Of a stretch of DNA of 64,000 bases, positions 18,187-19,401 are shown piece by piece; position 1 is the stretch's first letter; every line of letters starts with the position of its first letter. The notes under the pieces are model-generated. The model was given only the letters and a program-made list of their open reading frames with translations. It was not told where the DNA came from and made no database searches. The DNA comes from Zootoca vivipara. Taxonomy: Eukaryota. The stretch spans positions 14,942,001-15,006,000 of the forward strand of contig NC_083281.1 of assembly GCF_963506605.1 (NCBI RefSeq), written 5' to 3'. A program made the translations under genes and the position numbers.

Positions 18187-19401
18187 ATGTCGCAGGAGGG
18201 CGGCGCCCGGCCAAAAGCCAAGCAAGATGCAGGTCCTGGCGCCCGTCCCGCCGGCCGCTGGAGAGCCCGAGCGAGCCGATCCCTGGAGAGGCAGAGCCTT
18301 TCGCCGCTGGAAGCGGAAGCAGACGGAGGAGGCTCCTCGGGGTCCCCGGAGCCCGTCGGCAAAGGGGTGGGCCGTTCCTTGCGCCAGAAGCTGCAGGCAG
18401 CCGTGGGGCAGTGCTTCCCTCTCAAGAGCGCCTCCCGCTCACCGGACCTCTCCGTGCAGCGCAAGATCCACTTGCGGGAGCTGATGCTCGACACCTGCCC
18501 CTTCCCTCCTGGCTCGGAGCTGGCGCGCACCTGGAACCTCATCAAACAGCACACGGCGCCCGTCTCTGATCACGAGGCCCTGGCCGCACCGCGCTCTGAC
18601 GACGAGGATGACCGCCTGCGGGAGCGCCGGCGCATCAGCATCGAGCAGGGCGTCGAGCCACCCCCGGATGCCCTGATCCACACCTTCGAGGTGACGGCGC
18701 AGGTCAACAACCCCCTCTACAAACTGGGGCCGAAGCTGGCACATGGCATGAGCGAGCTTGCCGGCGCTGGATGGGCGGCGCTGGCAGCTACGGACGAGGA
18801 GGACGAAGAAGAGGAAGAGGAGGAGGCTGCGGGGTCCTCTTCCTGTGCCGTGGGGCTGCCGCCTGATGTGCGCATCCACACCCAGATCGACTACATCCAC
18901 TGCCTGGTTCCTGACTTGCTGCAGCTGACGCAGCTGCCCTGCTACTGGGGCGTGATGGACCGCTACGAAGCAGAGGCGCTGCTGGACGGGAAGCCCGAGG
19001 GGACGTTCCTGCTGCGCGACTCGGCGCAGGAGGACTACCTGTTCTCGGTGAGCTTCCGCCGCTACGGCCGCTCCCTGCATGCCCGCATCGAGCAGTGGAA
19101 CCACAACTTCAGCTTCGACGTGCACGACCCCAGCGTCTTCCACGCGCCCACCGTGACCGGGCTCCTCGAGCACTACAAGGACCCCAGCGTGTGCATGTTC
19201 TTCGAGCCGCTGCTCTCCGTCCCCGTCAACCGGACCTTCCCCTTTGGGCTGCAGCACCTCTGCCGCGCCGTCGTCACCTGCTGCACCACCTACGACGGCA
19301 TCGGCCGCCTGCCCATCCCCAGCACCCTCAAGGCGTATCTCAAGGAGTACCACTACAAGCAGAGGGTTCGCGTCCGGAGGCTGGACGCCTGGTGGAGCTG
19401 A
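18187..19401 (+). CDS. Suppressor of cytokine signaling, SOCS4/SOCS5 subfamily (SOCS5-like; probable socs5b/socs9 ortholog), 404 aa, single coding exon
   Basis: SOCS4/5 N-terminal conserved blocks ([17 protein letters not shown]; [35 protein letters not shown]; [39 protein letters not shown]), extended SH2 ([69 protein letters not shown]) and SOCS box ([27 protein letters not shown]). Start chosen at GCC-ATG 18187; in-frame ATGs at 18124 and 18151 are alternatives. Confidence 0.95.

Follow-up and report, generated by a model that had tools for sequence, protein, structure and literature searches.

A lizard gene between PAF1 and SAMD4B is very probably an ortholog of vertebrate socs9

The SOCS gene that lies between PAF1 and SAMD4B in a 64,000-nucleotide stretch of Zootoca vivipara DNA (the window) is very probably the lizard ortholog of vertebrate socs9 (SOCS5b of Wang et al.), a third SOCS4/SOCS5-type gene descending from the early vertebrate genome duplications, and a functional two-exon SOCS adaptor gene. 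Since the window protein belongs to the socs9 clade and SOCS4 and SOCS5 are separately present in squamates, the gene is not SOCS4 or SOCS5, nor did it arise by recent duplication. A first-pass annotation of the same DNA had proposed such a third paralog and had described it as an ohnolog from a whole-genome duplication that was kept in this lizard and lost in mammals. Both proposals agree with the trees reported below, in which the socs9 clade reaches from sharks to squamates, and with the earlier work of Wang et al. That socs9 exists, how it arose, and where it was lost have already been published, and the gene is annotated, so none of this is new. Wang et al. (2018) counted two SOCS5-type genes each in the reptiles green anole and Burmese python and in coelacanth, elephant shark, and gar, and a single one in mammals, birds, and amphibians (frogs); fish SOCS9 became SOCS5b in their scheme, which derives SOCS5a and SOCS5b from the 2R duplication (PMC6368001). 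A 425-amino-acid (aa) protein identical to the window open reading frame (ORF) read from the ATG at 18124 is present in NCBI, UniRef, and nr, and the public annotation of the source genome contains the gene.

The ORF is intact, as the first-pass annotation had stated, with an open frame from 18034 to 19401 on the plus strand in which the ATG at 18187 yields 404 aa up to a TGA at 19399-19401. The SOCS4/5 N-terminal block, the SH2 domain, and the SOCS box that had been read from the translation were all recovered by Pfam above the gathering score: PF12610 (SOCS N-terminal block) at aa 30-85 (34.2 bits versus a cutoff of 23.7), PF00017 (SH2) at aa 253-307 (E value of 8e-9), and PF07525 (SOCS box) at aa 352-386 (34 bits versus a cutoff of 23.5). 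In comparison with PDB entries, aa 236-401 matched the SH2-SOCS box structure of human SOCS4 (2izv; E value of 7e-92, an 86%-type match), and aa 63-129 matched the JAK-interaction region of SOCS5 (2n34; E value of 3.8e-22). The FLLRDS motif, the L-x-x-x-C of the BC box, and the LP-x-P of the Cul5 box were invariant in 18 orthologs, from shark to lizard. The protein carries the features of the SOCS4/SOCS5 subfamily, namely, an SH2 domain bearing FLLRDS, a SOCS box with BC and Cul5 boxes, and the N-terminal PF12610 block. The reported poly-Glu linker was found as well, and the alignment showed an acidic stretch of variable length in all sauropsid orthologs. The observation that the ORF is shorter than SOCS5 also stands (404 aa versus about 530 aa). 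The coordinates of all features are collected in Table 1.

Table 1. Features of the socs9-type gene, its protein, and its neighbors in the window
Feature	Position	Strand	Evidence
CpG island/promoter region of socs9-type gene	14300-15300		GC 0.68, CpG o/e 0.83 versus 0.24-0.29 in the intron
Exon 1, noncoding 5′ leader	14719-14924	+	X1 contig 14720-14923 joined to 18078; same joint in X3; contig start at or before 14719
Single 5′ UTR intron, GT..AG, 3.15 kb	14925-18078	+	Joint 14923 to 18078, "GT..AG (cut +1)," in X1 (depth 27, side 204) and X3
Exon 2 (remaining 5′ UTR, entire CDS, and 3′ UTR)	18079-20680 (3′ end approximate)	+	X1/X3 contigs 18078-20627; stranded reads of X23 and X24
CDS, 404 aa from conserved start	18187-19401	+	Public model: start 18124, 425 aa
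Upstream ORF, 19 codons, out of frame, gccaccATGt context	18108-18167	+	Leader ATG listing
Likely polyadenylation signal, ATTAAA	20657-20662	+	Sole AATAAA/ATTAAA on the plus strand between 19401 and 21557; RNA coverage up to the signal
PAF1, upstream neighbor, coding exons (ATG 632, TGA 12387-12389)	632-12389	+	Exon translations; Pfam Paf1 on three exons, E 2e-12 to 3e-16
SAMD4B (Smaug homolog), downstream, convergent, coding exons seen, ATG 45473	28371-45473	-	Exon translations; Pfam Vts1, SAM_1; PHAT_SMAUG look-alikes
GMFG exon, next gene, divergent from SAMD4B	59607-59708	+	PDB glia maturation factor gamma 51 bits versus beta 39.5 bits
Conserved N-terminal region (aa 63-129), SOCS5 JAK-interaction-like	18373-18573	+	PDB 2n34; Pfam PF12610 over aa 30-85
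Acidic (poly-Glu) linker, aa 203-213	18793-18825	+	Translation
SH2 and SOCS box, aa 236-401	18892-19389	+	PDB 2izv; Pfam SH2 and SOCS_box
FLLRDS pTyr-pocket motif, aa 274-279	19006-19023	+	Translation
BC box LQHLCRAVV (LQHLC = aa 355-359)	19249-19275	+	Translation
Cul5 box (LPIP..YL, aa 375-385)	19309-19341	+	Translation

The gene model was based on public RNA contigs and raw reads aligned to positions 14720 to 20719 of the window. A 2,334-nucleotide (nt) contig of run X1 covered 14720-14923, skipped 3,154 nt with GT..AG ends, and then ran from 18078 through the coding sequence to 20125. The same joint, from 14924 to 18079, occurred in a contig of X3, so that the spliced contigs derive from two separate studies. 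The splice sites read TCG/GTAAGG at 14922-14929 (donor) and ...TTGCCCAG/G at 18071-18079 (acceptor), with CCCAG/G at the 18078/18079 border. The first-pass annotation had joined a spliced leader from 15250 to 18079; the leader and the acceptor were confirmed, but the donor was not, as the contigs of the two studies used 14924. The site at 15250 (CAG/GTAAGC, a good consensus) was used by none of the contigs or reads seen and was rejected. The spliced contigs (14924 to 18079) place the entire protein in the last of two exons, and a single coding exon with a 5′ UTR intron is typical of SOCS4 to SOCS6 genes (PMC3238403). The CpG island and the polyadenylation signal that had been assigned to the gene were both borne out (Table 1). 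In the stranded raw-read runs X23 and X24, the first mate mapped to the minus strand, which indicates plus-strand RNA, over 18520-20719 at low depth (1 to 26). Plus-strand RNA of the gene extends to at least 20627. A (GT)n microsatellite at 20640-20655 lies directly before the ATTAAA, and reads were skipped at 20628-20719, so that the cleavage site is masked.

Exon 2 holds two further in-frame ATGs, at 18124 and 18151, either of which may be the true start codon in place of 18187. In the alignment of 18 orthologs, conservation sets in at MSQ(D/E)GGARPK, which corresponds to the ATG at 18187, the start conserved across squamates. When exons 1 and 2 were joined locally to list the ATGs, an additional ATG was found in exon 1 (14759), opening an 84-codon frame that runs across the splice junction. 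The 19-codon upstream ORF has a strong Kozak context and lies 17 nt ahead of the annotated start. Both frames are possible translational controls that could limit translation. In the 3′ UTR, length differences from the window were seen at 19744 and at approximately 19853-19855: the X24 reads and both contig sets lacked 4 nt that the window has, and the X1 contig carried approximately 82 additional letters at 19855. Such indels are polymorphic among individuals or populations.

In a word search with the window protein, the nearest matches were "SOCS5-like" proteins of the lacertids Podarcis and Lacerta (96% identity), followed by those of many squamates (77 to 85%), tuatara (80%), and turtles (68 to 70%). 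Next, at 56 to 64%, came the "socs9" proteins of coelacanth, shark, and ray-finned fish together with a 432-aa caecilian protein; mammalian SOCS5 ranked after these. For the phylogeny, SOCS4 rows were gathered with the C-terminal 260 aa as the query (the length window left out the longer SOCS5), SOCS5 rows were gathered with a mammalian seed, and cyclostome and arthropod relatives taken from a search of 1.84 billion representatives served as outgroups. Most of the proteins from that search were unnamed SOCS4/5-like ones of invertebrates, and none represented tetrapod SOCS4. Trees were inferred under the site-heterogeneous model LG+C20+F+G4 by PMSF, a quick one from 90 rows (SH-aLRT support) and a careful one from 72 rows (UFBoot/SH-aLRT support). 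The window protein fell into the socs9 clade in both (support of 100 in the quick tree and 99/97 in the careful tree), and it was excluded from the SOCS5 clade (99 and 99/91) as well as from the SOCS4 clade (100 and 100/99). The socs9 clade comprised proteins of coelacanth, sharks, ray-finned fish, a caecilian, turtles, tuatara, and squamates ("SOCS5-like") in addition to the window protein, and it was unchanged without the arthropod outgroups.

The first-pass annotation had asked for separate SOCS4 and SOCS5 loci in the genome that carries the new gene, and such loci were found in squamate relatives. All three genes are annotated in Hemicordylus; SOCS5 and the socs9-type gene are both present in Rhineura, Pseudonaja, Hemicordylus, and others; and Podarcis and Lacerta have SOCS4 plus the socs9-type gene, the two lying on different chromosome-scale contigs in Podarcis raffonei. 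The lacertid SOCS4 is a separate protein of 436 aa.

Compared with the socs9 proteins of fish, coelacanth, and sharks (SOCS5b in Wang et al. 2011 and 2018) and the reptile "SOCS5-like" proteins, the window protein has the same N-terminal block, SH2 domain, and SOCS box, and the gene has the same single coding exon with a 5′ UTR intron. The identity to coelacanth and shark socs9 is 61 to 64% over nearly the full length. Its N terminus is shorter than that of teleost socs9 (404 aa versus about 450 to 560 aa in total), and it has the poly-Glu/Asp acidic linker that is typical of sauropsid copies. It is a plain member of the socs9 group, without further distinction. Human SOCS5 (2p21) shares the domains of the window protein, whose N-terminal region matches the SOCS5 structure, but SOCS5 forms a clade apart, is approximately 530 aa long with a long additional N terminus, and has a separate gene in squamates that also carry the socs9-type gene. 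SOCS4 (14q22.3 in human) offers the best solved-structure match and has a similar length (approximately 436 aa); it too forms a separate clade, and the lacertid SOCS4 gene lies on another chromosome-scale contig.

Given the NCBI name "SOCS5-like" and the raw identity of the window protein, which is higher to SOCS5 (65%, over aa 62-400) than to SOCS4 (56%), the gene might be taken for a squamate- or sauropsid-specific duplicate or translocated copy of SOCS5 (or SOCS4) with no ancient ohnolog behind it. We consider this very improbable: the window protein groups with the socs9 proteins of coelacanth, shark, gar, and teleosts and with the caecilian protein, and the SOCS5 clade, outside which it falls, contains the SOCS5 of the same squamate species. 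Moreover, the 64% identity to coelacanth socs9 extends over nearly the full length and equals the identity to squamate SOCS5, which is reached over only aa 62-400. Had a SOCS mRNA given rise to a processed retrocopy between PAF1 and SAMD4B, the coding region would likewise be intronless; a single coding exon is, however, common to all SOCS4 to SOCS6 genes (PMC3238403). The gene has retained its 3.15-kb GT..AG 5′ UTR intron, and for this reason a retrocopy is virtually excluded; its own CpG island and the presence of orthologs across gnathostomes speak against such an origin as well. The first-pass annotation had named a recent retrocopy as one outcome that would have overturned its reading, and the retained intron and the orthologs dispose of it.

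The remaining alternative accepts the ancestry and questions the function, holding that the gene, though still transcribed, is decaying under relaxed constraint and no longer encodes an active E3 adaptor. Repeated loss in other tetrapods, a protein shorter than fish socs9 (404 aa versus 435 to 560 aa), the upstream ATGs and ORFs in the leader, and the low RNA depth would all fit such decay. Yet more than 15 squamates, tuatara, and turtles have an uninterrupted ORF, the SH2, BC box, and Cul5 box columns are invariant, the identity among squamates amounts to 79 to 96%, and the tree shows short terminal branches, so we regard decay as highly unlikely and retain the reading of a functional socs9 ortholog.

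The gene lies where the first-pass annotation had placed it, with PAF1 on the plus strand on one side, SAMD4B on the minus strand on the other, and GMFG beyond. From the neighbors PAF1 and GMFG, we infer that the Smaug-type gene is the B paralog. A CpG island at approximately 54000-55600 (GC 0.60, o/e 0.63), between SAMD4B (minus strand) and GMFG (plus strand), probably serves both genes as a bidirectional promoter region. The order and orientation of PAF1, the SOCS gene, and GMFG on the plus strand and SAMD4B on the minus strand mirror human 19q13.2. Two statements of the first-pass annotation on the human genome are matched by the literature: no SOCS gene figures among the genes published for 19q13.2 in the vicinity of GMFG, PAF1, and SAMD4B (PMC2937017), and human SOCS4 lies in a 1.04-Mb interval of 14q22 together with SAMD4A and GMFB, i.e., within about 1 Mb of both on chromosome 14 (PMC6110470). 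Zebrafish SOCS5b has been described with CALM- and PPM1-type neighbors (PMC3238403).

These flanks bear on the question of which gene was the duplication partner of socs9. In the careful tree, SOCS4 and socs9 were sister clades (99/97). This split was kept when the arthropod outgroups and two long rows were left out (SH-aLRT of 96) and under stricter column filtering (93). AU tests disfavored both a SOCS5-socs9 and a SOCS4-SOCS5 pairing (p of 0.029 each), and the two alternatives reached equal likelihood, 13.5 log units under the best tree. The signal for SOCS4 plus socs9 was confined to the N-terminal half (98), and the SH2-SOCS-box half alone gave no ordering of the three clades. The pairing in the tree fits the flanks, with SAMD4B and GMFG beside socs9 here and the paralogous SAMD4A and GMFB beside human SOCS4. 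SOCS4 and socs9 are also the two faster-evolving clades, with distant outgroups, and long-branch attraction is possible; the raw identity of the window protein, moreover, points to SOCS5 (65% versus 56%). That socs9/SOCS5b is the duplication partner of SOCS4 and not of SOCS5 is a suggestion that we put forward tentatively. If it is true, the name SOCS5b and the published 2R scheme, with SOCS5a and SOCS5b as 2R twins, would need revision. The paralogon context (PAF1-socs9-SAMD4B-GMFG versus SOCS4-SAMD4A-GMFB) provides a clean, testable handle on the 2R partner.

By homology with SOCS4 and SOCS5, we infer that the socs9-type protein would act as an adaptor that brings substrates to a Cullin5-type ubiquitin ligase and may bind JAK. 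The SH2 domain would bind phosphotyrosine on activated receptors or kinases, and the BC and Cul5 boxes of the SOCS box would recruit Elongin B/C and Cullin5. The N-terminal block, akin to the JAK-interaction region of SOCS5, may contact the JAK kinase domain. The predicted net effect would be a dampening of cytokine or growth-factor signaling.

The ranked hit lists and Wang et al. (2018) contained no socs9 of mammals, birds, crocodilians, or frogs. In birds, part of this absence could reflect poorly assembled GC-rich microchromosomes and not true loss. The caecilian Microcaecilia unicolor (P0025 and P0362) has a true SOCS5 of 536 aa as well as the 432-aa socs9-type protein, which is named "SOCS5"; thus, the loss of the gene was not amphibian-wide, and it survives in at least one amphibian order. 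Names differ between sources. The teleost proteins called "socs5a" and "socs5b" by NCBI/ZFIN (P0401, P0422, P0439, and others) fell inside the true SOCS5 clade, and SOCS5b denotes the NCBI/ZFIN socs9 only in the usage of Wang et al. The label "socs5b/socs9" of the first-pass annotation accordingly mixed two nomenclatures: socs9 is correct, but socs5b in the NCBI/ZFIN sense is a copy of true SOCS5. Reptile orthologs are labeled "SOCS5-like," which obscures their orthology to fish socs9, and a turtle fragment (P0284; 217 aa) is labeled "SOCS4-like." Squamates, tuatara, and turtles have nine or more SOCS genes, one of them for a SOCS4/5-type adaptor missing in mammals, and this is relevant wherever mammalian JAK-STAT or EGFR regulation is applied to reptile immunology or regeneration. 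Beyond correct annotation, the finding of the socs9-type gene matters little.

An Rfam search of the 13- to 22-kb region gave no match. The intron contains a palindromic MITE-like repeat at 16040-16290 with perfect inverted arms (...ggcaaactccggcc...gactacaactcccatcatcc / ggatgatgggaattgtagtc...ggccggagtttgcc...). RNA from its many genomic copies mapped here at very high depth (mean word depth of approximately 30,000 in X1), and many reads had "opposite strands" joints. A further repeat fragment lies just 5′ of the acceptor (17928-18000); it had a plus-mate depth of 21 in X23, and 95 reads shared a loose end at 17928. These reads probably stem from other copies of the dispersed element.
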